Source of the DNA: Basidiobolus meristosporus CBS 931.73
Lineage: Eukaryota > Fungi > Basidiobolomycota
Reading direction: 5' to 3'
Length of the DNA: 64,000 nucleotides
NCBI GenBank assembly: GCA_002104905.1
Contig: MCFE01000156.1
Location: 87,516-151,515, forward strand
Below the pieces are notes generated by a model. That model was given only the letters and a program-made list of their open reading frames with translations, was not told the DNA's origin and made no database searches. The position numbers were made by a program, and so were the translations under genes. This document shows positions 7,827 through 62,068 of the stretch, piece by piece (the stretch's first letter is position 1; every line of letters starts with the position of its first letter).

Positions 7827-8449
7827 GTATATATTACCACCTATACAAGGTGTATGGCAACTTTGCAAGTTCCACACTAATATGCTGCACAGTTGAGGTG
7901 ATAGAAGTATGTCAATTGTGGCAGGTGTGCATGTTTTTAGAGGCTAGTAAGCTGGAGGCCATAATATTTTTTGATTGGAACTAAATGCAGAATACCCAAG
8001 GTAGTCGTGGGTAAGCAAATAATGTGGGGTGATTCTACCATAAAGTATATCAATTTCACAAGGGCAAGTAGAAAAAGGACATACCAATTGGTAAATTAGT
8101 ATGATAGCATTACACAGAACTAGTTGTAGGTTGCCATACTGCCGTAATAGTGCCATTAAAGGCCTGCAATGAGGCTGTCAAAACACCACCAAGCTTTTGC
8201 CATATAAGGCAATTGGATGTACTGACTGGTTAGATCCACTGAAATTGTTGTAGAGTCCACTAAGACTGCTACAATGCCATGCCTCTCTTGGCAAAATACT
8301 GTACAAACACTGTTATGTTTTTAATTTTATTTGGCTGTAAAGTTTGCCACACACCATTGTGATTGCGTCATGAGACTGTGTAGATGGTCATTAATTCCAA
8401 GTTGCTGGTATTATAGTGGTCTTCTCATGGGATCTTGGTGACTCATCAA

Positions 8450-20300: not shown

Positions 20301-20629
20301 ATATTGGAAGTGATTGGGAGAACAAGTAGATTATGTGGTTTTCACTTAATGATTTATTGAATGTGAAACTAGTACTTATACTTTTACATAATCCTGGTAT
20401 AATGAACATGTAGAATAGGCTTAGCCAAGTCCAAAGAACATGTGTACAGATTTTGGGGTGGCTTGGGCAACTTATCTTACTTTCATCTATTGGGTACCTG
20501 ATATTTTGGGGAAAATATTCTAATCAAATCTGGACATGGAATTTGGTCAGTATTCCCTAGAATTTGAAGGTAATGATCTAAGTGACCAAGTTAGGTGAAT
20601 ATTTAGGTGAAATTACAAATTTTACAACA
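11307..20629 (-). mobile_element. Degenerate full-length copia with 3' LTR 11307-11656 and 5' LTR 20282-20629, interrupted by a nested copy
   Basis: PPT ctcccactc follows 11656. A variant PBS (GGTTGTGAGCCC on minus) lies beside 20282. Gag is at 19744-20270. The flanks do not share a TSD. Confidence 0.85.
14345..19023 (+). mobile_element. Nested copia with LTRs 14345-14693 and 18676-19023, TSD CAAAC, and a pseudogenised gag-pol
   Basis: CAAAC occurs at 14340-14344 and 19024-19028. PBS GGTTATGAGCCC follows 14693 and PPT GAGTGGGAG precedes 18676. Premature stops include CGA>TGA at 16459. Confidence 0.95.
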
Positions 20630-21420
20630 TCTAGAACATGAAATCTCTCAAAGTTGCACAAACAGCCTCAAACTTTGCACACTTGTTCTTGGGATCTGCC
20701 AAAGCATATTCTATGAGCTTTTCTTGCCACAATCACGTAATAGTATCAATACCACTGTTATATTCAATAAATTATTAAGTTAAAAGCACATAATCAGCTT
20801 TTTCTCCCAATAACATCTAATATCCCCAAAACTCTTACAGCAATATTCAGTGCAAACACAAATAGTCCATCTTCAGTGGTGTTAGCATAGTCATACTCTG
20901 GCTGCTTCTGCTATTCATCTCTCTTTGATGCACCAGTCCAATGTGTGTCAGTTCCTTTTGCATCAACTTCAAGAGTGGTTGCTGTTTCCTTTAAACTGAT
21001 TTGCATATCTTTGCTGGTGGTTATTGTTACAGAATAAAGGATTTTCTTTTTCTTGTTATTAGGGCTGGATTTTCTTAGTCCTTTATCTTGGAGCATTCCA
21101 TATGACTAATTTAAAGTCAGATCTTTAGTTCTAGACTCTATAGCTGATACAAGGACCTGAAGCTTGTCTGTCAGGATATTCAGGAGGGTAACTATCACAT
21201 CTTCATCAGTGGTTTGTGTGTCCACTGATTCCATCTCATTAACCACCTGGGTAATTCTGATGAATGGATTTTTCACTTCTGAATTTATCTTGAGTACTTC
21301 CACCAAAACATCAGGAGCTCAGAGTATGAAATATCATAAAGTTGTCCAAACTGCCCTCAACTTGTACGCATGTTCTTGGGACCCCTCTAAATATATTCTA
21401 CATATTTGTGAGTTGCTATA
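20630..21420. mobile_element. Copia LTR and gag fragments
   Basis: A plus-strand LTR piece ends near 20842. A minus-strand gag fragment reads VNEMESVDTQTTDEDVIVTLLN, followed by another LTR piece. Confidence 0.75.
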
Positions 21421-21869
21421 TAGGTTCCAAATACTCCCCTGGGAAGAGCCACATATTTTGGGATAAATCTTCCCCCACGCAGCAAAGCTGTGTTGTTAGT
21501 TGAAATTAAGCACAAGTAATACCAAAATGGTGTGGCGGGTGAACTCAAATGAACGGATCAAGCTCAGGGAAATGCACCCAACTGCCAACCATCACATTGG
21601 CAAGCTTTGGTATAGCTCGATAAGATAATATCAAAGCCAGCTCATCTTTTTAATACGCCAGATAATTCGTATAGTTCCCACAGTTTCATTTAGTACTAGA
21701 TGTCCGCTTGATTCATGTTTCACTAGTCAAAACATTTTGCTCATAACTGCAGGATACTCCGACTGCCACAAAACCCTGGCGATTTGAAATTAAGGCCGTT
21801 TAGCCTTTACATGTATGGCCATGATACAACAATACTGTGTATGCCGAACAGATAGCCCAGCGTCCCTAT

Positions 21870-23500
21870 TAGATCAAGTCATGCCAACGATATCAAGATC
21901 GCACATATCCTACCAAGAAATATCCATCGGTTGAATATGCACGAACTAGTTGCTGGATGACTCCAAAGGCCCACCAGTTCGAACTTGTTCCGACGTACTG
22001 GAAATGGCATCCATGTCTTGACCGCAAGCTGACCACGAAATGGAGAATGTCTGGGATGCGTCTCATCCCCAATGAACCTCCTAGAATATTGGTCATCAAC
22101 CCAGCACCAGGGCATGAATATATCAATCTTTCGCCCGAATATCGCTCCGTCTGATGGATGCGCAGCACGAAATACAGGGAGCAAATCCATTTAATACTTT
22201 TGCATTACCGAAGGGTGACAACCACAGTATTACTGGTTTCGAACTCCATATCAATGCTGAAACTAAGACGCATCGACCCATACGGCTCACATCCGAACTC
22301 ATGGCAAAGTGGCGCACTCGATTCTTCGAGGACCATCCATTCTCAACCGCGGGTAGCTCACATTGACCCTTACCAGTGCAGCAGATTCATCCGGCCAAGT
22401 GGGATCAGCAGAACCCCAGATCTAGCTGGCCATTGGGGTATGGCGCAGTATGTTGATCACCTGGAGACACCAAACAAAGCCAGCCCGGCGTGGCAGAGGG
22501 GTGCGGCTCTGATTGCCGATTCCCCTCTCCCTCGCCTCCCCCATTTCAAACAGCTCCGGCAAACCTGGGATCTGGTGCATGGTGAAACCAGAAATCCAAG
22601 CAAACTGGTAGTGACGGGCGTGGTATGAGATCCGTGAATTCGATGTTGAGTAGAATCTGCTCACCATCCCCCATCCCTCATCCCTCATCCACCAGCCTCC
22701 AACTCCAGATGGCCCCTAATGACTGACATCATGGCGTGAACCAACCGACAGGCTTTTCAGGTCGCAACAAGATTTCCTGGCTAAACGGTTGGCCTTGATT
22801 CAGCGGAGTAGGTCTGGACATCGATATGAACCCCACCCTCTTCCCTAACCCAATATATAATGTCACCTGGTGTTTGTTGGCAGAAACGGCAATCGAACGA
22901 TGCCCTTTCGATTCTCTGCGACAACGGGCTCCTTTCTTCGGCTGTACGATTTCCATTGACAGGTGCGCACAACCTGACCCACACGCACCCTGGATTCCCT
23001 TAAACATCAGATGGATATGGTGCGAAGGGTTATTTCCATATAGGCAGGGCTCGTACCAAATCTCTCTTATCTGCAACCTGTCGACTCACCATGTAAAACT
23101 CCTCTGTTCACGGCCGGCTGATCGGTGTTGACCAGATGATGGCTCAGCAATGCTCGCTTTACTGGATGTCGCGGCACGAGCTGCTCTTAGGGAAGGGGAC
23201 CTACGGCAATCGGCTCGAGCCTCCACCATTCGCACAGGCCCACCATGAGGCTGGAGACCACCGCTGATTACGTAGGCCACTGGCTGGTTGCAACGTTCTG
23301 CTTCAGCTGCCTCGGCGCAGCTCGTGATGGCTCTCAACGGAATCGCACCCACAGCAGTCCTACGGCCTTGCCCCCAGCCCATTCACTGTCACATGGGTAT
23401 CGTCAAGATTCGAAGTGGGAAATGTGGGGCTACTCGGTTCATCTCTACCCCTTTCAGCAACTGCCAAATCAATTCTGGCCAACAGGAATAATTGGCCGAT
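21870..23500. other. Unidentified gene-like region; strand and model unresolved
   Basis: CpG-normal, ~50% GC, with several 65-156 aa ORFs on both strands and no family I recognise. Confidence 0.25.
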
Positions 23501-24585: not shown

Positions 24586-25593
24586 ATGCCTGCTCCCATC
24601 GACTACACCGCTCAAACATTCAGTAAGGTTCAGAAGGCCGAGCCTATTGAAAGTGCAAACTTCGAGTAAGTATCCGGTCACAATTGTCGGAAGGCTTTGT
24701 TCCATTGCTAATTAGCTATTTTTAGCTTTGATTTTCAATTTCCGAATGTTTATGAACAGCCCTCTGCCCCTGTTGATGATTTCCTCCAACCAAGGGACTT
24801 GGAAGGATCTTTTTGTCGGGATTTTTCCTGTTGCGGCCTTGTTTTAGAAGATCTTCATGATTTACTTCAACATTTCGAGGAGTGCCATGTTCGTTTCGAG
24901 GCTGATGACTCCCAAGGCTTGTATCAAGAAGAAGAATGGTCTGCTTCCAGCGACTCGGGGGTCAACACCCCCTCTTCGCCCATCTCTGATCATGATTTGT
25001 TGGCACAGTACAGAAACGACGCTCTTGCTCTGAGCGATGTCTATTCTGAGGAAGCCTTGATCCAAAGCGATACCTTGACCTCTGCCTTCGACAACTCTGT
25101 TGTCAGAGCGGCCCAAAACCCAAAGAAGCGTTTTGCAAAGGAGACTTTGAGTGCGCCCGCGAAGAAGATTGCTCCATCATACACTCTGGATGTCAATGCC
25201 CTTCCACGTACCTTCACCGAAGAAGAGCTCTTCACCGGTATCCCATCCATCTATTCACCCGATTTCGTCGCTGGTGTCGATGATGTTCTTCATGCTGCCG
25301 CCGGTGTCATTCCGACCGAAACCGTTGAAATCAAGCCCACTCCGGCTGAGAAGCCATACAAATGCCCAGTTCCAGGATGTGAGAAATCCTACAAAAATGC
25401 CAATGGGTTGAAGTACCACAAACTTCACGGACACTGCTCGAACGGAGACGGTTCCAAACCTACCGTCAAGCCATACAAATGTTCCTACCCTGATTGTGGC
25501 AAGAGCTACAAGAACCTCAATGGGTTGAAGTACCACATTGAACACACCCATGTTTTGACCTTAGACCAAACCGCCACCTCAATCGCCATTTAA
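24586..25593 (+). CDS. SFP1: Sfp1-like C2H2 zinc-finger transcription factor; one intron at 24666-24725
   Basis: N-terminal FCRDFSCCGLVLEDLHDLLQHFEECHV and two C-terminal KPYKC...C.KSYKN.NGLKYH fingers give the Sfp1 split-finger signature. The GTAAGT...TAG intron joins in frame. Confidence 0.85.
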
Positions 25594-41812: not shown

Positions 41813-44340
41813 CTATGGATATTGCAGAGACCAGATCTTCAATGCGGCGTCATGGCCAACGGTGGCAATGGTCTCGTCGTCTACGAAGACGACGCCTGTG
41901 ACAGCTACTTGATGGGCACCTAGTGTACCGATGTCAGGATCAGGGGTTCCGGTGGCTGAACTGCGGGGAGCAGGGAACACACTTACCGTGAATCACGATC
42001 TTCTTCATTGGAGATTCGATGCTCCAGACGTAGACATTGGTATCCAGCGATCCGCTGACTGCGTGAAGGCCATCAGGCGACCAGGCAATGCTGTTGACGC
42101 GAGCGGTGTGGAAGACCCAGCGCGAGGTTTTCACCTACATGAGGATTGTGATGGTTAGCTAGACGGCACCTAAGCGTATTGGTAATCGCAATCGGAGCCG
42201 TACCTGTTTGTCGGCAACGTTGTATACCATAATCTTGCCCCGGGAGTCTCCGGCAGCAAGTAGAGAGCCATCGGGCGAGAAGGCCAGGGAGAAGACGGCG
42301 CCACGGTTGCTGTTCAAGGTACCATCTTCAACCAGCTCATCTCCATTGAGTTTGTACAGGTACACCTTCTCTGTCTAGAGTGCATTACGCAGGAATTAGA
42401 ACCATAGCAGACATCTCATCGCAATGACTGAGAAAATTACATCGTCACCGACTGCCACAATGCTGTTGTCTGGGTTGATAGCGACCGAGTTTGGAAGGTA
42501 GTTGATGGGTAGCTGCTTGCTGATTTTGCCGTCCTTGACAATGGCGATTCCCTCGGTTGTGACGACCACCGATACCTCATCTGTGGTGACTGAGACCCCT
42601 TTTGGCAGGACCCCGGTGGTGACAGCAACGGAGCTAACGTTGGGGTTAGTTGCTGAGTTGCGGTGTTAGGAAACGTAGGGGCATGTACCTGAATTTGTTT
42701 TCAGGAATCGAGGCGACACGCAAATGATCATCCATGCCGACGGAAACCAGCTTGTCGTTGACGGTGGTGATGCCAGTGACTTGGTTAGTATGGGCATCGC
42801 CAGTGAATGGAGTGGCTATTCCATCACTCGACCAGGAGCGTACGAGTGCGAGTTAAGGATGGTAAGCTAGAGGTGTATGCTGAGATTCATCTAAGAGCAA
42901 CAAGGATATAAATTCGCCCGTCGTAGCTACCACTGAGAAGAGTGCCATCTGCGGCACGGGCGAAGGCGGTGATGGCCTTGCTGTGTCCCTATGCATTCAC
43001 ATGTCATTAATACCATTCAGAAGGGGCTTCTTGCAATGGCGAAGCTACCTTAACAATACGAATAGGCTCGGGAGAGCTCAGGTCCAAGTAGTTGATATCG
43101 CCGGAAAGAGAGATGCTGAGAATAGTTTCCCCTTGCCATAAGTTGGCGACTTGCTGATCCTCAACGGTTGGCTTATCTGAGAAGCGGATGGTGCTTGGAG
43201 AAGATCAGCGTGGATGGCTAAAAGAAGCGATTCACGAACTCTACGTACTTGACGATTTTCTTCTCTTTCACATCCCATATCTTGGCAGTCATGTCTGCCG
43301 ATGAGGTAACAATATGTGTGCTGTCCGGGCTCCAAGAAACAGCAAAGATGCCTCCAGTATGGCCATCTGGCGTGTCGCTTAGCTCGGCAAGCTTTTCAGC
43401 AGTCTTGCCGTCATACAGGAAGATCTAGGGTCGTAACAATTGGAGCCGGCTGAATGATGGTTCCACGAAAAGGTGGCATATATCAGGCTTACCTTAAAGT
43501 CAGCACCAACACTGACGAAATACTCTCCATTGGGAGAGAACTTGACGTCTTGCACAAAACGAGAGTGATCACTGATGGAGCTCTGGAATTTGTAGGGAGC
43601 ACCATGATAGAAGTTGACTGTCATATCATCAGAGCATGTGACGGCACGGAAAGGTCTTTGAAGACGGAAGTCGCAAGCATTGATGGTTTTGCTGTGACCA
43701 CTGACTTCACCTACCGAGCTACCGGTATCGATGGCAAAAACATGGCCAAATCTCTCCTTTCCTTCGCCAACAGCCATCAGTCTTGAGCTTTCTGAATCCC
43801 AAGCGATGGCATTGATGCGCCCGTTCAGGATTTTGTATTCTCCCTTCAAAACGTGCTCTTCCTGGGTGGCATCCCAGATTCGTACATTGCCTTGGACATC
43901 TGAAATACCGGGGTTAACTTTATCTTCACTGGCATTCCTGATGGGAAAGCTTACCTCCAGATGCAATATAATATCCGCTTGGGGACCAACTGGCAACAGT
44001 GGTTTGGCAAGCATGCTGAGTATACTCGGAAGCTATCTCCGGATTCTACGGTTATCAGCACAAATCAGGTTAGAATTGGGCAGAGGAGAAACAGAGCAGG
44101 CTCTATAGGCCAGATGAAGAGTCACGTACCTTGATGTTACGAATGAAAATGCTTTTTCCATTGGCGTAAACTATGTTTTCGCCTTTGGGATCAACACCGA
44201 TTTGGAGAGGTGTACCGCGAATCGGAGCGGGATTTGGGGCATAGATGCTCTCTTTACAAGCAAGAGGTTTAGCTGGGTGTTGACGGCGTGGCAAGACGGG
44301 TCAGCAGGTAAGGTAAGAACTTACTCTTGGTGTATGACAT
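41813..44340 (-). CDS. AIP1: Actin-interacting protein 1 (WDR1), WD40 repeats, multi-intron
   Basis: Motifs SIYAPNP...[42 protein letters not shown] and [15 protein letters not shown]. Confidence 0.93.
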
Positions 44341-44717: not shown

Positions 44718-45266
44718 TTAGTAATTGGGATTAACAACATTGACGTGCTCGTACTTATATACACACCCGCATTCTGGGCAGCGGTCAATATCGTGGCCCT
44801 TCTCTACTGTGATCCAGATGTTTTCATGGGAGTCAGATGGGAAACCAGTGCATCCAATGTAACGGAAATCATCGCAAGTCTTGACCAAGATGGGGTTCTT
44901 CTTCGTGCCAAGATGGGTCAAAGTCAAAGGTTCCATATCGAAAAACTCCTTGCCTTCCATTTTGGCCAAAATCTCCATACGCTCTAAACCGGTAGCTTGT
45001 TCAAGATCAGTAGGGATGGTACCGGCTTTGGCACCTGGACCCAGGAGAGGCTCGACTTCCTTGTGGGCTGAAAGAGAAAATAGCATTAGTAAGGGCTAGT
45101 TGGATGCCGAGGGGCCAGGCCGTATCACGCTACTGGCAAGTATGGAACTTCAATTACCGCCGAGACGAGCAGGGAGGACAGAGAAAGCCTTGACCTGAGT
45201 TCTAGGTAAGACTCTAGCTCTAAGAGCAGATGACACAGCAGCACGACGAATCACAGCAAAAGACAT
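44718..45266 (-). CDS. COX4: Cytochrome c oxidase subunit IV (mammalian Vb), one intron
   Basis: An Arg/Ser-rich presequence is followed by GTIPTDLEQATGLER, GCTGFP and RCPECGCVYK (zinc site). Confidence 0.93.
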
Positions 45267-45763: not shown

Positions 45764-46341
45764 CTACTGGAGGTTGTACATCCAAATCAATGAGCCAACT
45801 ACAAGGAGAAGATTTAGTGCCGAATATAGCCGACATGAACACAGGCATACTTACTGGATACAATCATGGGGTTAATGGTGCCCTTGTCGAGCTTAGCGCT
45901 GCGGAAAACCAGAACCTCGGTGGAGAAATGGAACAATGCCACAACAAAGGTGAACCAGACCATATTAAAGACACTGGGAGAAAATGCCGTACTTAGTAGA
46001 GATATCGAGGCGAAGGTATTAAACCAACCTACGTGGGGTTATCAAGATGGAAGGCACCATAGAAACGAACCATGGCGACAGTAAGAGTCCAGGTAGCAAA
46101 CATGTGGGAAGTCAGGACTGTCACTATGGACCAAAGAAAAGAAATTGACAAGAGATCAGCATCTGGAAACGTAGTTGGTCTATGATGAAGGCGTACCTTG
46201 TTCTGGCTTGCGTCCATAAAGTTGTCTGGTAAGTCCAAGTGGGGCGAGGTAGCATTGTAGTGAGTTAAACACTGATACTACGGCAATAAAGAGGACCCAT
46301 TTGGCAAAGAGGCCTTCAGGTAAATATTCGGCGTAGCTCAT
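45764..46341 (-). CDS. ERG28: Ergosterol biosynthesis scaffold Erg28, multi-intron
   Basis: The spliced translation gives LPEGLFAKWVLFIAVVSVFNSLQCY, FATWTLTVAMVRFYGAF and ALFHFSTEVLVFRSA. Confidence 0.88.
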
Positions 46342-47410
46342 GTTCAGGAAGAGAGGTTTGTCAAGTTCACTGGTGCGCGGATATTGCAGTTTAAAAAGGC
46401 CAATGCATCCAGGCATAGATTTTGATTTCGACATGAATCCAGATAATTTCTGGACAAATTGGTCCTCTGGATAAGGCAACGACTCCAAAATTGGCCACGT
46501 TCAATGATGTGCTACGTGCTAGAGAATATATGGGATTGATGGTAACACGTCATTTACGCATCCAAAACGGTGAGTCTCTTATCTGAACCTTGTCACGATT
46601 TGGCTAACGTGTGGCAACCAAGGCAGCATCCGAGCTTTCTCGAGCATAATGGGCCTTTAGGGAGCCAAGGTATGGACGAATTCGGCAGAGCATGCAGACG
46701 CGTTGGCTTGAATGGCAATTGGGTGCGATTTGTTGTTGCGAAGAGGAGACAAGCCATCCATGGATGCCCGGCATGCGAGCTGGTGCATATCTCACAAAAG
46801 CCTCACAAAGCAAGCGGGACCTAAGCTGAAGTTCAATGCTCATCTCTAGTTGTAGCATCCAGCCCAGAGCTAGTTCCAAATAAATCAAGGCCGATATGCC
46901 AATCGATGCAAGTGTCTTAAATTGGTCATTGGGGTTTGCAGGTGCTGGCAGTTGGGTGCAGAAGCCGCTATTTCCGATTCCGAATATCCTATAGTGGAGC
47001 GTATCATGGGAAGAACTGGAATTACTGTTGGATATTGATGAATGTAGACCCGAGCTTAGATGCCAAAAATCTAGGTTTCATCCACCGAGCCAACGCCATC
47101 TTACCATCTGATGTAGCCAGTCTTGCTGTTCCCTCGGGACTTGGTCTGTATTCTTGAATTCCGCTGCCAGCATTATCTGAACGATGTCTACTCAGCCCAA
47201 ACCATCGATTTCACATTGGTTCACCCACCCTCACGGGAGCAAGAATAAATGATTGTGTGGTATCATTCAAACTAAACTTCCCCTAGCTACGTTTCTCTGT
47301 ATTGCTTTTCACACGCTCTACGCATATTCGTAATCGCTCTGGAGCATACACTGGTGCAGCGGACTCCAATCTTCCTCTAACCCCTTCTGACTTGCTTCAG
47401 CTTTGCAACC

Positions 47411-48152
47411 ATGATAACTTTGGCCGTTCCTGAGCTGGAGACCATACTGCCCCTTACTGATCCCTCGGATATCCAAGCCCACGGTTTTCGAACTCCTACG
47501 TTGGTCAAGCGTAAGGTAATTTTGGACAAGTATCCAGGCTCCATTGAGTAAGTCTTTTCACCTAGTGTGTTGACTCGGTTGAAGATTCACAAATGTTCTT
47601 TCTCCTGACTAGTTCCAATGTGAATATTGTTGAAACTCTTGGAATGCTGAATAGTAGGTCGCCTTCGTGGCCACCTACTCCAAGAGCCAAACATGCTTAA
47701 CATTTATCTTGTATTTAGAAGCGCACACTCTCACACAAAATGCCCCTAAACATAAAGCCCAGCCCCGGAAATGGGTCAAACGCTCGACAATAATCAAAAC
47801 GCTAACAGGCGAAGTTTCCATTTCTTCCTGGCGTCCAGGTATGCATGGTGTGCTGAGATAGGCTACCTCTTGCTTAACCCCAACTCTTTTGAGTATAGAT
47901 GGTGCTCCCCAGATTGAACGTCCTGCTGCAGTCAGCAAATTCAACACGCCGTTTCCTGTGGATGATGCGTTGCGTCCAGTGCAATGTACTTATCCAGGCT
48001 GCAATCGGAACTTTGCAGACCAAAGCGGACTCACCAAGCACTCAGTTATTCATGGCCCCAAAACGCTTCGATGTGGCTTAAATGGGTGTACTAAGTGCTT
48101 TGCTGACCGTACTCGTTTAAGGAGACACCAGAGAGGAGTGCATGGGCAATAA
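47411..48152 (+). CDS. Compact YY1/Pho-like protein (~185 aa) with a REPO/2W-hairpin-like motif and two C2H2 fingers
   Basis: Three GT-AG introns join in frame, including 47654-47718 and 47839-47898. The protein has KWVKRSTIIKTLTGEVSISSW followed by CTYPGC...KHSVIHGPKTLRCGLNGC...LRRHQRGVH. Confidence 0.8.
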
Positions 48153-50185: not shown

Positions 50186-51283
50186 AATCTAGTAATCTGG
50201 TCCCTACATATCGTTCCGATACGTAGCGAGAATCTCGATAGGAACTTTAGTGGGACGAAGTATGCTACGTAGCCAGGCAATGCATATGCATATGCATTTG
50301 TATGAAGCCAACCTAATAGTTCAGCAGTCCATTCAAACAAAGGTCTGTATGTATATTCTGGTTGCCTTGGCCTAATAATGGAAGTTTCCTAGTATTATCA
50401 CCAGCTCCATAACTCATATCTGGTAGGTTTCCAGATATATGGTCTCATATGGATCCCAACCGCATTCCTTTATCGTATGCTTATTTTCTTATGTCCTCCG
50501 CCCGATACCGTACCCACCCTGTCAATGGGCCAAACATCTGAATGCGCATACTCCTCGCTGACTTGAGTTGCTATTTTAGAGCGCCCTAGATTATTTCATG
50601 TATTCGCCTCATGTAGCTGGTGGCTGTGCAATGGCAATAGGATAGATGAGGACGAGCAAGCCGCCTGGAACCCTTCTCACTACAGTCTTTCCAGGATCAC
50701 CAAGGCTACCTTGAAAGCCCCGCATTTATCAATAAGGGGCCCCTGATATCGACTCAATGCTTTAGCCTTGCTGCACACAATATCTATTAACGATCCAGAT
50801 TAAAACACATCACCAAATGCGTGTCAGAAGCGCCTAGATTGAAGTAGACCTGAATGGTAAAAGGACGCTGTTATTTCATGTGCATGCGCCAATTGATGAA
50901 TCGCGCAAACACCCTCCATTATGAGGCTCACATTCATAGCTTTGCTATGCCCTTTCTCACTTAGGAATGGCAAGGGCGTGGCTATCCTACACAAGAACAG
51001 ATGGGCTTATTTCGCGAGATGCATAGACTGGTTTACATCGCGCTACGCTAAAAAATGGGGACGAAGGCGGTGGTTATACCAGCTGATACTCTGCCCAGCC
51101 TGATCGGCTCGCACAGTCAGTCCACTGTAGGGGGTGGCCAAGGACAGCTAGTGTCCGGAAAGTAGGGGTGCATATGCCATAACTCTTCATCCGTTGGTGC
51201 CTTCGCTTAGAATTTCCAACTGGGGCTCCACATATAAAGGGAGGGGCAGCTATTTGCAAGCGTATACATCATTTGGAAATACC

Positions 51284-52288
51284 ATGAGGTCACTCAAATT
51301 TTTCCTACACGCCTTTGGCTTGCTTGTTCTACCCATAGCAACCGTTGGGCTGCCTACCCAGCCGAAGTTACAAGTAATCTACCATAGCCCTTCCCCAGCT
51401 TTGTTGTCGACCGTTTCTACCGCCATTATTGGCGAGCAAGAGGTCGTGGTTATCGATTCTGGATTCACTAGTTCAGCAGCCTTGCAGATGATCTCGCTCA
51501 TTAGACAAACCACCGACCTTCCAGTCACCAGAATCTTTGCAACACATGAGCACCCAGACCATTATTTCGGGGCTACCGAGTTCCTCAAGGCATATCCCAA
51601 GGCCGCGTTACTCGCATCGCCGAGTGTTGCACAAAGGATGGAGGCCCATGCGCAACAAAAAGGTACATGAACCAGCTGCGCTTTCTGTTGCATTTTACTA
51701 AGATACTCTCCTAGTCAATCAGTGGACTCCTGTTTTCGGACCGGCAGAAATTCCCAGATCTCCCATCATAGCCCAGCCTTTCGACGGAAACGAGTTCTTC
51801 CTCACAGGGAATGAAGACGAGCCAATTCAAATATTGCAGCCGCTGCAAGGAGATGTCGAAGACGTCAGCGTCTACTGGATCCCATCGCAAAAAATCCTGA
51901 TAACCGGCGATATAGTATACTCCAGCAAAGCTCATGTATGGTTAGCTGAGGCGACTCCAGCAAAGAACAGGGAGAACTGGATCCGGACCTTGAATTGTAT
52001 GTATACGGAACACCGGTCATTTCTCGGTCTGCTCTAAATATCCTTCTTCTATTAGATCTCCAGAGCCTTGATCCTGCATTAGTGCTTGCTGGCCATGTTC
52101 CCGATACGGAGGAACCCAAAGTGTCGGATATTAGTGCCACGAAGGAGTATATCGAGTATTTCAATGACAATATCTTCGCTAAAGGCTACACTCCCTCTGA
52201 AATACTAGACTTATTGAAGAGCAAATATCCAGATCGAACTGGCATGGTTGCGCTGAATCAAACTGCATTCGCATATGGTGCTAATTAA
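51284..52288 (+). CDS. Secreted metallo-beta-lactamase-fold hydrolase, two introns (first at 51663-51714)
   Basis: Hydrophobic signal-like N-terminus; motifs VVIDSG, THEHPDHYFG, ITGDIVY and VLAGH; the introns restore the frame. Confidence 0.9.
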
Positions 52289-52494
52289 TTCTGATTTACA
52301 AATGTACTTATATGAGACATACGTGCACAAGCGTGCATTGCTAATGTGATGGTTGTATCCCGCAATCTTGTTGGATATCAATAAGTAGAATTGATGTCTT
52401 GTAATCCGCCTCACTAATAGCAGTTGTACTGTAAAGGCCCGAAAAATTGTTTATAATTAAATAGTGTGATATCATTCAAGGATTAGAGCCATTC

Positions 52495-52860
52495 TTAGGG
52501 GGGGGGGGAAACCACCGGTAGGTGTAATCTTTATTGTCAATCATTGTGAAGATAAAGAGGTCAGGGATTGATTCTGTAGTCTTGTGACATATTTGTACAA
52601 ACACTTTGGGTTAATATATAGATAGGTTGGGTGTAGGTGTTATAGTAAGGGCTAGGAAAAGGTTAGAAGAGCAGGGGGTCTGGGGGATGCAGTCCCCTAG
52701 AGAATAAAAAAGCAGGGGGTTTGGGGGATACAATCCCCCATACTGCTCCCATACTCTTTAAATTCCTGTTGGATTACTTTTCTCTCATTCTTGGTTCTGG
52801 TCCCTTAGGGTTAGAATTCCTCCTCCTAACCCTTATCACCCTAACCATAAATATTTTTAC
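52495..52860 (-). mobile_element. Short non-coding element sharing its 3' terminus with the LINE; SINE-like or a truncated related LINE
   Basis: The minus-strand end AATAAAGATTACACC-TACC-GGTG...C11-TAA parallels the LINE end at 62078-62117. The 5' boundary is uncertain and no TSD is visible. Confidence 0.4.
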
Positions 52861-53257
52861 CCTACAATTGGCACATTGTCTGCTCATATAGTGGGCATGT
52901 CTGGGCCAATATTTGTTGCCCTATACTGTCCATATGCTCTGTATAAGTCTTGATGACTATTTAATTAATAAATTGTTACTTTTAACATATATCTAATAAT
53001 TAATGGGATTCATCCCAATCTGGCCACAATCCCATATTTTGATAAGCTTTGGGCACCATAAATTGCATGGCCCTAATATGATAAAAAAATTCATGGCCAA
53101 TACAAATTTTCTGTAACCCAATTGCTTTTACCAAATATAAAGTGTATCCCAAAGTTCAATATATATTATGGCTATAATAGAAACTTTATTTGACACCATT
53201 GCAACTACTACTTATGTTCTATGCGCACATGTATCCCGCGGGAATTGTAAAACTTAG

Positions 53258-54040
53258 CCACGTGGTACAAAAGTGCTTTTATTTTTCATCATGATAGTTT
53301 TACATGAGTTCCTAACGCACTTTGAGAGTATGCAGTAGCCATACCCCAACAGGTTTTAAGGATGTCCACTAGCTACGTCTACTTCTGTCTAGCAGGAGCT
53401 ATCAATCATCAGCCGCGCAATACTGAAATGCTTTTATTTTTCATCATGCTAGTTTTGTATGAATCCCTAACGCACTTTCATAGTGCGCGGTAACCATTCC
53501 CCTACAGGTTTTAAGGATACCCACTTGCTACGTTTACTTGTGTCTAGTGGGAGTCATCAATCATCAGCTGCGCAATACTGAAATGCTTTTATTTTTCATC
53601 ATGATAGTTTTACATGAGTCCCTAACACACTTTTATAGTGCGCGGTAACTATACCCCAACAGGTTTTAAGGATACCCACTTGCTATGTTTACTTGTGTCT
53701 AGCGGGAGTTATCAATCATCAGCCGCGTGGTAATAAAGTGCTTTTATTTTTCATCATGATAGTTTTACATGAGTCCTTGACGCACTTTCATAGTGCGCGG
53801 TAACCATACCCCAACAGGTTTTAAGGATACCCACTTGCTACATTTACTTGTGTCTAGCGGGAGTTATCAATCATCAGCTGCGTGGTAATAAAGTGCTTTT
53901 ATTTTTCATCATGATAGTTTTACATGAGTCCCTAACGCACTTTTATAGTGCGCGGTAACTATACCCCCAGGAAGTAGTGTGGATGCTTACTTTAAATGCT
54001 CACTTGTGTATTGTACGGACTATCAACAAACAGCCGCGTG
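53258..54040. repeat. Tandem array of five 155-bp units, the last one diverged
   Basis: GCTTTTATTTTTCATCATG starts at 53275, 53430, 53585, 53740 and 53895. Confidence 0.95.
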
Positions 54041-54426
54041 GGAATGGAACATCATAGAAAAGCATTGCTTTGTTGTTAGCAAGTATTGATGTGCAAATAG
54101 TGGTACTATGTGAATTATTGAGTAACTATTTACTCTAGTTAGTTCCAACATATTCCTAGACAATATGCTCAAAATCAATATTAGCATCAATAGCTTGCTC
54201 TTTGATCACTAAACCACGGCACCCAATATGTGGTGGCCTTGGTTTTGTCTAGCCATTGAGGAATGAAACCAGAGTACAGTCACAAGAGAGGCAAAAGTGA
54301 AATGTGATGAAGTAAGTGTATATGAAAGTAATATAAGTCTACAGGACAGAAGAGTACAACTAGTAGTTAAACAGCACTCACTGACACTCCACCAAGTAGA
54401 GCACCAATGCAGACAATAAACAAGTC

Positions 54427-54888
54427 ATGAGGGGAAAGCTTAAGGACCGCTACTTGGGGATCAAGACCAAAAGAGGAAGCTGCCTCTACCATAGCAGTCC
54501 TTGCGCTCCAAAGGAAGACCAAGAGTCTACTATAGACAAAGATTGCGGCAAGAAGAGCAGTACAATTACCAGTTCTGGTAGTGGTACCTTTGGAAGTCCC
54601 AAATACCTGGAGAAAACTCGGAAAAAATTGGCAGATGACTCAATTGTCCTGAGGAGAAAACAAACCAATGCAATTGAGCAGTTCCAAAACAAACTTCAGC
54701 TTAGTTCTTCTTTGCCTCACTATAAAGTACTCCAAGTGGCTTATTTTGATTATAAGCGTATGAAGGAGAATCAGGCAGAGACTGATAAATTAAGTGATAG
54801 TCAATTGCATCACTTCTTAGATCAGGTAGAGAAACAGTTGCACAGCCAAGAGATGGAACAAGAATTGACAATTACAGAAACCAAATAA
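54427..54888 (+). other. Intronless 153-aa ORF of unknown function in CpG-depleted DNA
   Basis: Open frame followed by an AATAAA-rich tract; no recognised domain. Confidence 0.35.
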
Positions 54889-55039
54889 TTTTGCCAATGT
54901 AGTTTTGCATTTTAATAAAATAAAAGGGTGTTAATAAGAACAGAATAAAGTTAACTTATGTGTACATCAAATGAATCAAATACTGGCTAGATGGATGTTA
55001 CGTAGGAGCAAGAAGCTCAGTAACCTCAAAGGAAAGATA

Positions 55040-55905
55040 TGATGAATGGGCCACCAACATCATCAGAATGAGTATAAAATGGAGAAAGTAGACATAATCC
55101 TTCATAAAAAACAAGAAGCATGGAAGCAGGCAGTAGCCAGGTAGATGCCAGATGTGAAGGTAGAGTACAAAGAGAGCAAGGAAGGGGACAAGGATGTGGA
55201 AGAGGACGCGGAACCAGGTGCAGAAGAGGAAGAGGGCAAGGAAGTGGCCAAATCCAAGAGGAGCGTGAAGGAGGTGTTGCAGCAAACGTGGATGATGCTG
55301 AGCAAGTTGCTGTAGTCACTACCAGGCAGCCGGTCAACCAAGTTTCCCAAGTATTGTCAGAGGTTTGACAAGAGCTTCCGGAATATAGGACAACATTGCA
55401 CCATGAGATATTGCGACGTATGTGCCAGGAGATTAAACAGAGGAGGAGTGATATTGTAAAGCTAAATTGGAATATTGCTGGACTTCAAGTCCAGATTGAT
55501 TTCAGTTTCCACCATTCTACTGAGGCATTAGTGGCACAAATGGTGGAAAAGTTTGCCCACATCAGGGCAAGCGATGAGCAGGGTGCATCTTCCAACCCAG
55601 GTGTACTTGCAAGCAACAGTATTGGAGGGGATACTACTTCCTCCCTTGTACCTACCACAAGCTAAGAGACAAGAGCAGAATCCTCCACAACAATGAGAAT
55701 GGCCCCCACACAGGTTGATATGGAAGTGTGCAAAGAAGATGTGGAGAAGCAGAGTGGGGATACTATGGGCCAACCAGAAACTGTAATGGAGGCGGAGAGA
55801 CCAAGTCACATTGTCATCTTAAAAATACCACAGGTTGATTCATTGCTATCACTTCCCCCATCATCACTATCTGTGCCCCCATCACCACTGCTATCCTCTG
55901 GCTAA
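55040..55905 (+). pseudogene. Decayed ORF with an RG-rich low-complexity segment
   Basis: ORFs 55120..55368, 55396..55665 and 55693..55905 lie in one frame, separated by single stop codons. It contains GRGQGCGRGRG...RGRGQG. Confidence 0.45.
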
Positions 55906-56096
55906 CTTGAGTAAATAAAGAATTTCCACCATCCCAAATCAATGAATTGACAAGTAATAAGTTGAACTGATAAGATTGACAATTTACAGACTAATATACG
56001 TAAAGTATGTAGTACTTAAGAGCTTTCAAGTTGTGGTGTATTATCAAGTATTCACCGTCACATAAATCACGCAGCAGTTGTTGTATCCCTATCCCA

Positions 56097-57016
56097 ATGG
56101 CATTAGAAGCCAGCAGTTACAAGGAGCATTGGAAAAATTTTGGCGTTTACCTGGCAATGGTGGCTGGTGTAACAAAATGCAGCTATTGCTTGATGACCAT
56201 TACCCCATCTATGAGATACTTGCTATTATATGGAGGGTATTCTGTTGAGCACTTTCAAGACAGCAAAATATCCCTGCCTTATGATGAGCGTAGAGCTGAA
56301 GAAACATCCGGCCGTGGAATACTCTATGAGCCCAGCTCAAAGGTTCAAATGATTCACCTTGCAGATCTACACAGTGATGAAGACATCACAGTGACAGTTC
56401 TCCCAACTCCAGACAACATATCAACTACAGAGGCAGCCAAAGGGGTGATTTTAATTGGCAACAGCTGTGCTAGTGACCACAAGAATCTCTACATATATGG
56501 TGGCTTTGAGCTGAGTTGTAGAGAATACTCAGGGCAACATGAAAGTGCCAAAAAACGGGGGAAAAAGTGATATGAAGCAAGAGTGGGGAGACAATCAATA
56601 GAAGACTGAGCAAGCTGGAGGTAATCACGTACAAAGATGGCAATGGATGCTCCAGAGTATTGGAGACAAGGCCATTCTTGAATAATCCGGCAAATATGCC
56701 TTCAGCAAGAGGTTGGGCAGTTCTTACGTACGCATTTGATTGCTTATTCTTGCTGGGCAGCTATCCTACACCATTGGAACCACCTTATTCCCAACCAAAT
56801 GGGAGTTTTTTAAACAAGTTCTACTGTTTAAAATTGCAAACTGGTGATTGGGAAAGACAATATGTACACTCAGCAATACAGGAGCTTGGAGAAAACTTTA
56901 TTGCTGTGGTAAACAAGTATGGCAACCAAATCCAATACATCAACAATGCTAATGTTACATTCACCTATGATGTCAATAATCAGATCTGGATTTACCCTCC
57001 CAATCCAAGTCAGGAA
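56097..57016 (+). pseudogene. Kelch-like repeat region; 5' part of a Kelch-SNF2 ORF
   Basis: Motifs LLLYGG, LYIYGG, PSARGWA, LFLLGS, FYCLKLQTGDW and FTYDVNNQIW, with a frame break near 56570. Confidence 0.6.
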
Positions 57017-57366
57017 TGTTGTAAAAATTTGTATTTTCCACTTAAATATTCACCTAACTTAGTCACTTAGATCACCACCTTCAAATCCTAGAGAATACTG
57101 ACCAAATTCCTTGTCGGGATTTACTTAGAATATTTTCACCAAAATACCAGGTACCCAGAACATGAAAATTCTCAAAGTTGTCCAAACAGCCCCAAAATTT
57201 GCACACATGTTCTTGGGACCTTCCTTAACCTATTCTATGTGTTTGTAATGCCAAGACCATGTAAAAGTATAAATACTACTTTTACATTCAATAAATCATT
57301 AAGTGAAAACCACATAATCTACTTGTTCTCCAAATCACTTCCAATATCTCCAAGACTCTTACAACA

Positions 57367-57378
57367 GGTTATGAGCCC
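57367..57378 (+). promoter_or_regulatory. Primer-binding site complementary to the anticodon arm of initiator tRNA-Met (half-tRNA priming)
   Basis: GGTTATGAGCCC is the reverse complement of GGGCUCAUAACC. Confidence 0.85.
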
Positions 57379-60300
57379 CGAGCTGTCACTCTCTGCAATG
57401 TCTACTACTGCTATTACTGGAATTTTTCCCTCTGCTGAAAAGTTGGATGGATCTAACTACCAAGTGTGGAAGGTGAAGATGAAGATGCTGCTGCAAGAAA
57501 GAGGCCTTTGGGATATTGTCATGGGAGAAGAATGCCCTCCTAAAAACGTGGGAGAGGAAGCCTTAAAGTACCAGAAGAAAGAACAAAGTGCCTTTAACTG
57601 CATTTGCCTTAATGTCAAGGACAAATTGCTAATTCAATGCTCAAGAGCAAAAACGGCAAAGAATGCCTGGAAGGCATTAGAAGACACCTACCAGTCATGT
57701 TCAGCTGCCAAGAAAATGTATCTGAGAAGAAAATTCTTTACTACAAAGATGCTGCCAGGAGAAGAAATGAAAAATCTAATTAACAGAATTACCCTGCTGG
57801 TAGATGAGATGGAATCTGTGGGCGCACCAACTACTGATGAGGATGTGATAGTTACCATCCTGAATAGCCTGACAGACAAGTTTCAGGGCCTTGTATCAGC
57901 CCTAGAGTCCAGAACTGAAGATTTGACCTTAAATTACGTATATGGAAGGCTCCTGGATGAAGAATTAAGAAAATCAAGCGCCAATAAGAAGGAAGAAGAA
58001 AATGCTTTAATAAGCAATGATAACCAACAAAGGAGGTACCCAAGACCCTACAAAGGCAACAACAACCTATTTTGCAACTACTGCAAAAGGAAAGGACACA
58101 CATCAGACCGGTGTTTCAAAAAGAGAGATTATCAGCAAAAGAAGCCTGAATATGGAAATGCTGCAACAACTGAAGATAGACTATTCATATCTGCACTAAA
58201 TATGACCACAAACAAGGATTCTCAGACGTGGTATATTGACTCTGGAGCTTCTCAACACTTTACACACCAAAAAGAACTTTTTACCCAATATCAAGAAATT
58301 CCAATTAAGAAGGTTTTCATGGGTGACGATAGAACACTTGATGCAGTGGGAGAAGGAACTATCCAAGTAAACCTTAGAAGCAGTGAAGGAAGCCATACAC
58401 TGACCTTTAAAGAAGTACTCTATGTACCAGAAATAGCTAAGAACCTACTCTCTGTAAGCAAGGCCACAGCAGAAGGACTCAGTTTCAGTTTTGACAATTC
58501 TGGATGCAGGATCACTGATCAAAATGGTGCTCATATTGCTTCGGGCATCAGAGATCAGAACCTATACAAGTTGACTTATATTCCATCATATCTGGAAGCC
58601 AATATAAGTAACTTAAATGAAGAAACACCAATGCTTTGGCACAGGAGATTTGGACACATCAATTTTGATTATTTGCGCAAAATGATCAAAGATCAGCTAA
58701 TTTCTGGAGTGAAAATTGATCCCCCAGCTAATTTGGAGCACTGTGAAGCCTGCATATATGGGAAACAAGCCAGACAACCGTTCAAGAGCTCTGGGTTAAT
58801 CAAAACTAAGAAAAAATTAGATCTAATTCACTCAGATCTGTGTGGACCTATGCAAAATTTATCCTTAGGCGGGATGAAGTATTTAATCACTTTTATTGAT
58901 GATTATACAAGATACACATGGGTCTACTTCATGGAGAGAAAGGAAGAAGCTCTGTCTAAGCTCAGGGAGTTTAAAGCCATGGTGGAGAGAGAAACTGGTG
59001 AAAAAATCAAGAAAATACGCTCTGACAATGGTGGAGAATATACCTCAAAACTCTTCATCCACTTCTGCAAAATTCATGGGATAAAGCAAGAGACTACTGT
59101 ACCATACTCCCCACAGCAAAATGGAGTAGCAGAACGAGCTAACAGATCAATAATTGATATGGCAAGATCTATGATCCATGATCAAAAATTATCCTATGAT
59201 TTTTGGGCGGAATCAGTTGCCACTGCTGTATATCTTAAAAATAGGAGTTATAACAGAATACTTCGTGATTCTACTCCATTTGAAGCATGGTATGGATACA
59301 GACCAAGTGCAGAACATCTAAGAATATTTGGGTGTACAGCATATGCCAAAAAATTGGCTGGAAATCAGTCAAAATTTGAGCCAAAAAGTGTAAAATGCAT
59401 TTTTTTGGGCAACTGCAATGAGAGTAAGGCATACAGACTCTACAATACCAAAGCAAAGAAGCTTATCAAGTCCAGGGATGTGTTGTTTGATGAAAATTCA
59501 AAATTTTCACAAAAAATGACATCAGATGATGACGAAAATTTGATCTCAAGTTCACCAATTGTCAGGATTGAATCAGAGCAAAACAATGAAAATTTTTTCA
59601 CTCCAGAGGACTCTACAACCGTGGTTCAGCCAGAATCAGTGCCCAGGAATATCCCAGAAGTGATCATTCCAGTATCAAATGCCCGGAGATCCAATCGGAC
59701 AAGAAATAGCCCAAATTACTATATCAATGAGGGTACAAACTTAGCCTATGCCTATTCAGTCCATGTTGATGAACCCCAGACTGTAAAAGAGGCCCTAAAT
59801 AGCCCTCAGACGAAGTTTTGGAGATCTGCAATGACTGAGGAATATCAGGCACTGATGGAAAATCAAACTTGGGACTTAGTCAAATTACCAATCAACCGAA
59901 AATCAATTGGATGCAGATGGGTCTTCAAGACAAAATACAAGGCTGATGGTACAATTGAAAGATACAAAGCAAGACTTGTAGCCAAAGGATACTCTCAAAC
60001 AAAAGGACTTGACTATACTGAGACCTTTGCACCGGTAGCCAAGTTTAATTCCATCAGATTAATATTGGCTATTGCAGCCAAATATAAGTTTTATATTCAT
60101 CAAATGGATGTAAAAACTGCATTTTTGAATGGAGAACTTGATGAGGACGTGTATATGGACCAGCCTGATGGGTTTGTTGACCAAGATAACCCCCATTTGG
60201 TCTGCAAGCTTAAAAAGTCACTATATGGTCTCAAACAATCACCGAGAGCCTGGAATTGCAAGATAGATTCTTATTTGGAATCTTTGAGTTTCAAAAGGAG

Positions 60301-61342
60301 TAATACTGACTATAGTATATACTATAAGCCAGATAGAGCAAATCTAGTTCTATTAGCTCTATATGTGGATGATCTTATTATAGCCGCCAATAACCTAGAA
60401 ACATTGGAAGAGACTAAATCCAGCCTATCTAAGGAGTTCAAGATGTCCGATCTAGGAGAACTTAGTTACTACTTAGGGATTAAGTTCTCCATAGACAGAA
60501 GTACCCAGACTATTACCCTAAGCCAATCCAAGTATATTCAAGATATACTAAAGAAGTACAAAATGGAAGACTGTAAACCGGCAGCTACCCCAATGGAGAC
60601 AAACCTTAACTTGGTCAAAACTCAACCAAATCAAGAGAGCTTGGTGCCATCTGAAAGCCCTGACTTTCCTTATCAATCTATGGTCGGCAGTCTGATGTAT
60701 ATCATGCTTGGAACACGTCCAGATATCTCATATTCAGTGGGAGTTGTCAGCCAACATAATCAGAATTATGGATCTGATCATATTGCAGCAGTTAAGCGGA
60801 TTTTTAGATACCTAAAAGGAACTGCTGATATCTGCTTAAGATACACTTATAAGGATTCAGAACAGGATCTTGTGGGATACTCTGATGCTGATTGGGGACA
60901 AAATTTAGAAGACAGAAGATCCACCACAGGATACACCTTTCTTTACTGTCAAGGAGCAATTTCATGGAATTCAAGAAAGCAACCAATCATAGCACTTTCT
61001 ACCACAGAGGCAGAGTATATGGCAGCCTGTGAAGCTACAAAAGAAGCAATGTGGTTAAGAAAGCTCTTTACAGATTTAGGCCTATGTCAAAAAACGCCTA
61101 TTACTTTATTTCAAGATAATCAAGGATGTATACAATTAGGTAGAAATCCAACTTTTCATGCTAGAACCAAGCACATAGATATTAGACATCATTTCATACG
61201 TAAAGCTATAGAGAATAACTTAGTTAGCTTAGTTTACTGTCCTACAGATAAAATGATTGCAGACATATTTACCAAACCACTAGCTAGAGACAAGTTTGAA
61301 TATCTTAGGTCAAAATTAGGACTAGTCAGTATGAACATTTAG
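57371..61342 (+). CDS. Copia gag-pol polyprotein in a single uninterrupted ORF
   Basis: UBN2-type gag, CNYCKRKGHTSDRC knuckle, WYIDSGAS protease, WHRRFGH..CEAC, integrase (HSDLCGP, IRSDNGGEY, NGVAER), RT YVDD and RNase H GYSDADW. Confidence 0.97.
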   Translation: MSPELSLSAMSTTAITGIFPSAEKLDGSNYQVWKVKMKMLLQERGLWDIVMGEECPPKNVGEEALKYQKKEQSAFNCICLNVKDKLLIQCSRAKTAKNAWKALEDTYQSCSAAKKMYLRRKFFTTKMLPGEEMKNLINRITLLVDEMESVGAPTTDEDVIVTILNSLTDKFQGLVSALESRTEDLTLNYVYGRLLDEELRKSSANKKEEENALISNDNQQRRYPRPYKGNNNLFCNYCKRKGHTSDRCFKKRDYQQKKPEYGNAATTEDRLFISALNMTTNKDSQTWYIDSGASQHFTHQKELFTQYQEIPIKKVFMGDDRTLDAVGEGTIQVNLRSSEGSHTLTFKEVLYVPEIAKNLLSVSKATAEGLSFSFDNSGCRITDQNGAHIASGIRDQNLYKLTYIPSYLEANISNLNEETPMLWHRRFGHINFDYLRKMIKDQLISGVKIDPPANLEHCEACIYGKQARQPFKSSGLIKTKKKLDLIHSDLCGPMQNLSLGGMKYLITFIDDYTRYTWVYFMERKEEALSKLREFKAMVERETGEKIKKIRSDNGGEYTSKLFIHFCKIHGIKQETTVPYSPQQNGVAERANRSIIDMARSMIHDQKLSYDFWAESVATAVYLKNRSYNRILRDSTPFEAWYGYRPSAEHLRIFGCTAYAKKLAGNQSKFEPKSVKCIFLGNCNESKAYRLYNTKAKKLIKSRDVLFDENSKFSQKMTSDDDENLISSSPIVRIESEQNNENFFTPEDSTTVVQPESVPRNIPEVIIPVSNARRSNRTRNSPNYYINEGTNLAYAYSVHVDEPQTVKEALNSPQTKFWRSAMTEEYQALMENQTWDLVKLPINRKSIGCRWVFKTKYKADGTIERYKARLVAKGYSQTKGLDYTETFAPVAKFNSIRLILAIAAKYKFYIHQMDVKTAFLNGELDEDVYMDQPDGFVDQDNPHLVCKLKKSLYGLKQSPRAWNCKIDSYLESLSFKRSNTDYSIYYKPDRANLVLLALYVDDLIIAANNLETLEETKSSLSKEFKMSDLGELSYYLGIKFSIDRSTQTITLSQSKYIQDILKKYKMEDCKPAATPMETNLNLVKTQPNQESLVPSESPDFPYQSMVGSLMYIMLGTRPDISYSVGVVSQHNQNYGSDHIAAVKRIFRYLKGTADICLRYTYKDSEQDLVGYSDADWGQNLEDRRSTTGYTFLYCQGAISWNSRKQPIIALSTTEAEYMAACEATKEAMWLRKLFTDLGLCQKTPITLFQDNQGCIQLGRNPTFHARTKHIDIRHHFIRKAIENNLVSLVYCPTDKMIADIFTKPLARDKFEYLRSKLGLVSMNI

Positions 61343-61703
61343 CTGAGTGGGAGTGTCGTAAAAATTCGTATTTTCCACCTAAATATTCACCTAACTTAGT
61401 CACTTAGATCACCACCTTCAAATCCTAGAGAATACTGACCAAATTCCTTGTCGGGATTTACTTAGAATATTTTCACCAAAATACCAGGTACCCAGAACAT
61501 GAAAATTCTCAAAGTTGTCCAAACAGCCCCAAAATTTGCACACATGTTCTTGGGACCTTCCTTAACCTATTCTACGTGTTTGTAATGCCAAGACCATGTA
61601 AAAGTATAAATACTACTTTTACATTCAATAAATCATTAAGTGAAAACCACATAATCTACTTGTTCTCCAAATCACTTCCAATATCTCCAAGACTCTTACA
61701 ACA

Positions 61704-62068
61704 AGGAAGAAATGAGTACAAAGCAGCTACTAGGGCACATTCTTAATGAATTGGCAGCAATCTCTCAGCGGCACAAGAGGGAAGGCAAAGGAAGTGCTGA
61801 GACTGAAAATATCTTGCGGCATAGTGCCCATGGTCTTACTGTCCCACTTAAGAACCATCAAGCATTTGGCGTACAATGGCTGATGTATACAGAGGCCATC
61901 CATAAAGGAGCATTGCTTGCCAATTCCATGGGACTTGGAAAGACATTGCAGATATTAAGTTGCATATTGGAGACACCTGAGCAAAGGCCAAATCTTATTG
62001 TTGTCACGCTTGGAATACTTCTTAATTGGGTGATGGAGATAAAGACAAAAACAAGGATATCCAATGAA
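61704..62068 (+). pseudogene. SNF2-family ATPase N-terminal fragment; 3' part of the Kelch-SNF2 ORF, truncated by the LINE
   Basis: LKNHQAFGVQWLM...GALLANSMGLGKTLQIL...LIVV...LLNWVMEI corresponds to the Q motif, Walker A and motif Ia, with degenerate residues. Confidence 0.8.

Follow-up and report, generated by a model that had tools for sequence, protein, structure and literature searches.

A four-exon gene on the forward strand of the window, i.e., the 64,000-nt stretch of DNA from the early-diverging fungus Basidiobolus meristosporus CBS 931.73 analyzed as a whole, encodes a 183-aa protein at positions 47411-48152 that probably represents a chromatin adaptor of the YY1/Pho type in a reduced, member-like form. 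A predicted disordered N-terminus and a predicted REPO or two-tryptophan (2W) beta-hairpin are followed by two C2H2 zinc fingers, which a short conserved linker separates from the hairpin. By analogy with characterized proteins of similar composition, its most likely role would be that of a DNA-binding client of the INO80 Arp4-actin module.

Gene Structure and Splicing

The 183-aa product is identical to the public protein ORX96380.1 (P0001 in the following) from strain CBS 931.73, which bears the label "hypothetical protein K493DRAFT_314558". P0001 was recovered when the hairpin exon served as query against 1.84 billion representative proteins, a search that returned two Basidiobolus proteins and in which YY1's own hairpin would fall far below the threshold. 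For establishing the gene model, splice combinations were enumerated and then compared with P0001, whereas whole-protein analyses made use of the public P0001 sequence, not of self-joined exons. The codons split at the three junctions (D46, K60, and D100) all agree with P0001. Hence, the three canonical introns of the original prediction are borne out by a model equaling the public protein, with a product of 183 aa compared to the approximately 185 aa initially estimated.

All features described in the following are located on the plus strand. Exon 1 (47411-47547) begins with the ATG start and consists of 45 codons plus 2 bases, with its translation corresponding to P0001 residues 1-45. This N-terminal region is predicted to be disordered (pLDDT about 30) and is poorly conserved, having only an M-x-T-L start in common with the relatives described below. 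Intron 1 (47548-47612, 65 nt) reads GTAAGT...CTGACTAG, thus ending with TAG, and is followed by a micro-exon of 41 nt (exon 2, 47613-47653) encoding (D)SNVNIVETLGMLN(K), equivalent to P0001 residues 47-59. A matching micro-exon sharing an IVET motif is present in the relatives. Downstream of intron 2 (47654-47718, 65 nt, GTAGGT...TATTTAG), exon 3 (47719-47838, P0001 residues 61-99) bears the REPO/2W-hairpin. The hairpin core PRKWVKRSTIIKTLTGEVSISSWRP extends from 47763 to 47837 (PRKW...SWRP, residues 75-99, with the tryptophans W78 and W97) and includes KWVKRSTIIKTLTGEVSISSW, encoded at 47769-47831. Intron 3 (47839-47898, 60 nt, GTATGC...TATAG) is of phase 1 and splits the D100 codon. Exon 4 (47899-48152, P0001 residues 101-183) encodes the conserved linker and the two fingers, matching Pfam zf-C2H2, and ends with the stop codon TAA at 48150-48152. 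Finger 1 (C129-H151, 47985-48053) shows the spacing C-x4-C-x12-H-x3-H and continues directly into an HGP linker, while finger 2 (C158-H181, 48072-48143) is built as C-x4-C-x12-H-x4-H and the protein terminates two residues further on. In line with what had been proposed for the locus, the hairpin is found at 47769-47831 and both C2H2 fingers are present together with their HGP linker.

Relatives and Selection

When P0001 and an alignment profile were used as queries in word-based searches, four relatives emerged, all from Basidiobolus, giving a set of five proteins together with P0001. In the second of these searches 3,246 candidates were scored, and among proteins of 100-320 aa no relatives outside of Basidiobolus were found by the word-based approach at E<=0.001. 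Like P0001, P0005 belongs to B. meristosporus, and P0002, P0003, and P0004 come from B. ranarum, with two of the B. ranarum relatives being publicly named "Transcriptional repressor protein yy1". In the five-protein alignment, hardly any variation is seen in the segment PRKWxKRxxxIxTLTGEVxxxSWxPDGxP, in the linker or in the two fingers, while the N-termini diverge. Apart from the fingers, no part of the protein is better conserved than the hairpin segment. In addition, a metagenome scan resulted in three loci (L003, L004, and L005). Among these, L003, the one that was translated, was rejected as a relative, as it encodes a Q-rich protein with three fingers at the N-terminus and is devoid of the hairpin.

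For comparing gene structures, the homologous loci L001 (encoding P0005) and L002 (encoding P0003) were considered, and both possess introns at the same three places as the window. The phase-1 intron splitting the Asp codon after SW(R/C)P shows the pattern G|GT...AG|AT in all three loci, and the ending VHGQ-stop after finger 2 is also conserved in all of them, whereas the intron sequences themselves are unalignable. In the hairpin exon and the finger exon alike, dN values between 0.09 and 0.20 were obtained for the three loci, at dS values of 1.3-1.8 or saturated beyond computing. Such low dN at high or saturated dS is indicative of strong purifying selection acting on the hairpin and finger parts. 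This comparison between loci, considering both intron positions and selection, argues for the exons being spliced as modeled. Judged from sequence, the locus thus is an intact, selectively maintained gene of B. meristosporus. That the gene model is instead an annotation artifact or a decaying duplicate might be suspected from the window copy being the most divergent of the five and having a shortened N-terminus. However, its reading frame is intact, every residue invariant in the other proteins is kept, and the conservation of intron positions and stop as well as a dN far below the saturated dS make this explanation scarcely credible.

Besides, the public model of P0005 (K493DRAFT_303039, 193 aa; L001:6001-7043 on MCFE01000254.1) stops inside finger 2 (...GLDGAF). 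As L001:6593-6841 encodes a complete finger exon up to the conserved HQRGVHGQ-stop, the P0005 model looks mis-spliced and the gene itself intact. In B. ranarum, the 60-nt post-hairpin intron (L002:6506-6568) lacks an in-frame stop, and its retention would add 20 residues in frame, whereas an in-frame stop is present in the corresponding introns of the window and L001.

Genomic Neighborhood

COX5B and Erg28 are located just upstream of the gene, both in the window (44718-45086 and 46180-46488, minus strand) and in B. ranarum (L002:2949-4764). At the second B. meristosporus locus, COX5B is kept (L001:4459-5026) and no Erg28 gene was called. A segmental or whole-genome duplication is suggested by this shared neighborhood. 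In sequence, however, L001 and L002 resemble one another more (84% amino acid identity) than they resemble the window copy (72-77%).

Elsewhere in the window, an unrelated 264-aa ORF (24799-25593, plus strand) shows Pfam matches to C2H2 and 'aberrant zinc-finger' models near its C-terminus. A WD40-repeat ORF (43379-44014, minus strand) and an ORF with a metallo-beta-lactamase fold (51194-51670, plus strand) are probably exons of larger genes. The gene-rich middle of the window (GC 0.45-0.56) is flanked by AT-richer regions at 8000-22000 and 52000-62000 (GC 0.37-0.41), and an ORF of 1,367 aa is found at 57239-61342, a site initially assigned to a copia element.

The Two-Tryptophan Hairpin

Searching all PDB chains with the exon-3 translation gave only three matches below E=10, all of them REPO peptides, namely human YY1 (4c5i) at E=0.12 and Drosophila Pho (4c5e and 4c5g) at about 0.5, and no Pfam family was matched by the same translation. 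The REPO alignment is ungapped from the first through the second tryptophan. In accordance with the original prediction, 10 identities to the YY1 REPO and an identical W-W spacing were established. Moreover, when scored without gaps using BLOSUM62, the hairpin 23-mer reaches a value of 60 against the YY1 REPO, while the next best of the 45,661 stop-free 23-mers derived from all six frames of the whole window reaches 26 (mean -21, SD 9.5). A hairpin profile built from the five Basidiobolus proteins again returned the YY1 REPO as top PDB match (E=6e-4), with Pho at 0.013, and the Ies4, Rtt102, and Swc4 chains available in the PDB were not matched by it. In the same profile search, however, unrelated proteins, including a designed WD40 protein and the LDL receptor, appeared at a chance level of E=0.004-0.03, so that the sequence evidence for the hairpin alone has to be regarded as moderate.

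Structure prediction with AlphaFold2, based on the five-sequence alignment, gave two strands at residues 78-87 and 90-99 with a pLDDT of about 80, thus predicting a beta-hairpin in which W78 and W97 sit at the outer ends of the two strands. Both tryptophans, whose loss from relatives would have spoken against a REPO motif, are found in all five proteins, and 17 other hairpin positions are likewise invariant.

The Zinc Fingers

Exon 4 gives two Pfam zf-C2H2 matches, and AlphaFold2 predicts the beta-beta-alpha fold for both fingers. The linker joining them, H-G-P-K-T-L-R, is invariant in all five proteins. Downstream, no further finger motif was detected up to position 50500. The best PDB match of exon 4 is the YY1 finger domain 1UBD (E=7e-16, whole chain). 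The corresponding alignment covers YY1 fingers 1 and 2 including the HGP linker (hgpk versus hgpr), thereby confirming that this linker also joins fingers 1 and 2 of YY1 as stated in the original prediction. YY1 fingers 3 and 4 fit equally well, and finger 1 taken individually can be aligned with YY1 finger 1 or YY1 finger 3 to the same degree. Within the finger region of about 55 residues, per-domain scores are slightly higher for WT1 (36.9-37.8 bits) than for YY1 (33.2 bits), with GLI and ZNF410 close behind, also when using the profile. The finger pair alone would hence not prove kinship with YY1. Rather, the likeness to YY1 is deduced from the combination of hairpin, colinearity and HGP linker.

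Alternatively, the locus might encode an ordinary two-finger C2H2 transcription factor, with a W...W segment resembling REPO by chance or convergence and having another role. The single-sequence E-values against REPO peptides are indeed weak (0.12-0.5), unrelated proteins come into the range of 0.004-0.03 with the profile, and structure and atlas searches returned generic zinc-finger proteins alone. More precisely, Foldseek matches in the PDB were confined to generic zinc-finger structures and did not reach E<=0.001, and the ESM Atlas gave generic C2H2 clusters, with a "YY1-like" chordate cluster at rank 3 that is to be taken as a lead only. On the other hand, REPO peptides are the sole PDB matches of exon 3 as well as the top match of the profile, YY1-like fingers with the HGP linker follow in colinear order, and the W...W segment is the best conserved one outside the fingers, with a predicted hairpin framed by both tryptophans. 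Consequently, a chance resemblance appears very improbable, and the YY1/Pho-type adaptor is the reading followed below.

Putative Role as INO80 Client

A YY1/Pho-type adaptor of this layout would act by docking its hairpin (residues 75-99) on the Arp4-actin pair held by the INO80 HSA helix, with the two fingers reading a short DNA motif. In this way, the protein could hold INO80 at particular promoters or modulate it at these sites, similar to Iec1 and IEC-1. The model draws on structural work demonstrating that the 2W-hairpin of Ies4 and YY1 grips a Gly-Pro turn of actin, which is paired with Arp4 on the Ino80 HSA helix (PMC9733932, PMC11761322), as well as on YY1 and Pho being INO80 subunits (PMC9733932). 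Like Iec1 and IEC-1, they are finger proteins that co-purify with INO80 and direct it to target genes (PMC5406019, PMC8373062).

Since 2W-hairpins also serve SWR1/NuA4 (Swc4) and SWI/SNF (Rtt102, BCL7) complexes (PMC9733932, PMC11761322), the motif by itself does not define which complex is the partner. Accordingly, the hairpin might dock onto another Arp4-actin machine of the SWR1, NuA4 or SWI/SNF type, and the protein would then be the DNA-binding recruiter of that complex. This would be compatible with the occurrence of 2W-hairpins in Swc4/DMAP1, Rtt102, BCL7, and BDH and with the reuse of the Arp4-actin pair in several fungal complexes (PMC9733932, PMC11761322). Besides, the specificity of Ies4 for INO80 is due to an extra Arp8-contacting region (PMC11761322), and no such region was identified in the Basidiobolus protein. 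However, the hairpin sequence is closest to those of the INO80 subunits YY1 and Pho, not to Rtt102, Swc4 or Ies4, and the combination of a hairpin with YY1-like fingers resembles the INO80 clients YY1, Pho, and Iec1. Recruitment to a different Arp4-actin complex is therefore considered rather unlikely.

The REPO/spacer hairpin is also known as the element of Pho and YY1 that binds Sfmbt/MBTD1 (PMC3828522), and a possible Polycomb link had been raised for the locus. In such a PhoRC-like adaptor, the hairpin would capture a protein with four MBT repeats and thereby anchor repressive complexes on DNA, comparable to Pho-Sfmbt. Among the 11 Sfmbt-contacting residues of Pho, about seven are kept or conservatively replaced (K151R, I155, K156, M158L, F162V, V164I, and W167). 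In contrast, the other four are changed, with T replacing the salt-bridge residue E159, S replacing M166, P replacing S169 and, as stated for the window copy, T replacing V153. Moreover, no fungal PhoRC was found in the literature searched. The Polycomb link is not supported, and a PhoRC-like function is distinctly unlikely. The INO80-directed adaptor remains the preferred reading.

Evolution and Comparison With Known Systems

Conceivably, Basidiobolus keeps an ancestral fused fungal YY1 gene, and the split state of Dikarya and fission yeast would then have arisen by gene fission or domain loss. This scenario is tentative and less than probable. In case of being true, the 183-aa protein would be the smallest natural YY1, needing no more than a hairpin and two fingers to connect a DNA sequence with the INO80 Arp module. 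Kunert et al. consider fungal Ies4, which is without a DNA-binding domain, as the counterpart of YY1 and describe clients with 2W-hairpins as rapidly evolving adaptors (PMC9733932). The fused fungal protein would suggest that the sequence-reading form is old and has been split or lost in Dikarya, and it would bridge the YY1 proteins of plants and animals. In practical terms, hairpin, spacer and two fingers together could provide a very small natural construct with which to study, structurally and biochemically, the coupling between DNA-sequence reading and the INO80 Arp module. These considerations are limited in weight by the proteins being already public, some even under the name yy1, and by fungal YY1-like INO80 subunits being known. 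The evolutionary interest of the fused protein is hence rated as modest to moderate.

The Basidiobolus protein resembles YY1, Pho/Phol and AtYY1/PtYY1 in having a two-tryptophan hairpin N-terminal to C2H2 fingers of the GLI-Krüppel type, with a flexible linker in between. Its hairpin and its fingers both find their best PDB match in YY1, where finger 1 is likewise followed by HGP. At 183 aa, it is considerably shorter than YY1, which has a length of 414 aa or more. In addition, only two fingers are present compared to four or five in YY1-type proteins, the spacer between hairpin and fingers is about 29 residues long, and finger 2 shows C-x4-C instead of the C-x2-C of YY1. The acidic and Gly/Ala-rich tracts of YY1 (PMC3828522) are missing as well. 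With two fingers instead of four and a conserved early stop, the protein does not qualify as a full member of the YY1/Pho family.

The architecture had initially been termed animal-like. Its essential part, the occurrence of a REPO-like hairpin and YY1-like fingers in one fungal chain, is confirmed by the present analysis, but the term itself is too narrow, since plant YY1 also combines REPO and fingers, with REPO being described as INO80-interacting domain (PMC10146089). This layout consequently appears to be pan-eukaryotic, old and retained. A literature search did not reveal any described fungal protein joining a YY1-type hairpin and fingers, nor any study on YY1 in Basidiobolus.

The closest parallels within fungi are distributed over several INO80 subunits. 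Iec1 from Schizosaccharomyces pombe and IEC-1 from Neurospora crassa (NCU03206) are small C2H2 proteins described as homologs of YY1/Pho, and both recruit Ino80, with which they co-purify (PMC5406019, PMC8373062). Unlike the Basidiobolus protein, however, and as far as compared by description, a REPO/2W hairpin is not reported for them in these studies. Iec5 of fission yeast carries a YY1/Pho-like segment with a conserved tryptophan needed for function (PMC7896557), and the 2W-hairpin of Ies4 anchors this INO80 subunit to Arp4-actin (PMC9733932). Both Iec5 and Ies4, the latter from Saccharomyces cerevisiae and Chaetomium thermophilum, are without DNA-binding fingers. The Basidiobolus protein did not match Pfam INO80_Ies4, with solely zinc-finger and FOXP-CC models being matched, and in view of this and of its fingers it is not an Ies4. 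In fission yeast, the corresponding features are thus borne by separate subunits, with the fingers on Iec1 and the hairpin on Iec5 and Ies4, whereas in Basidiobolus they are united in one chain.
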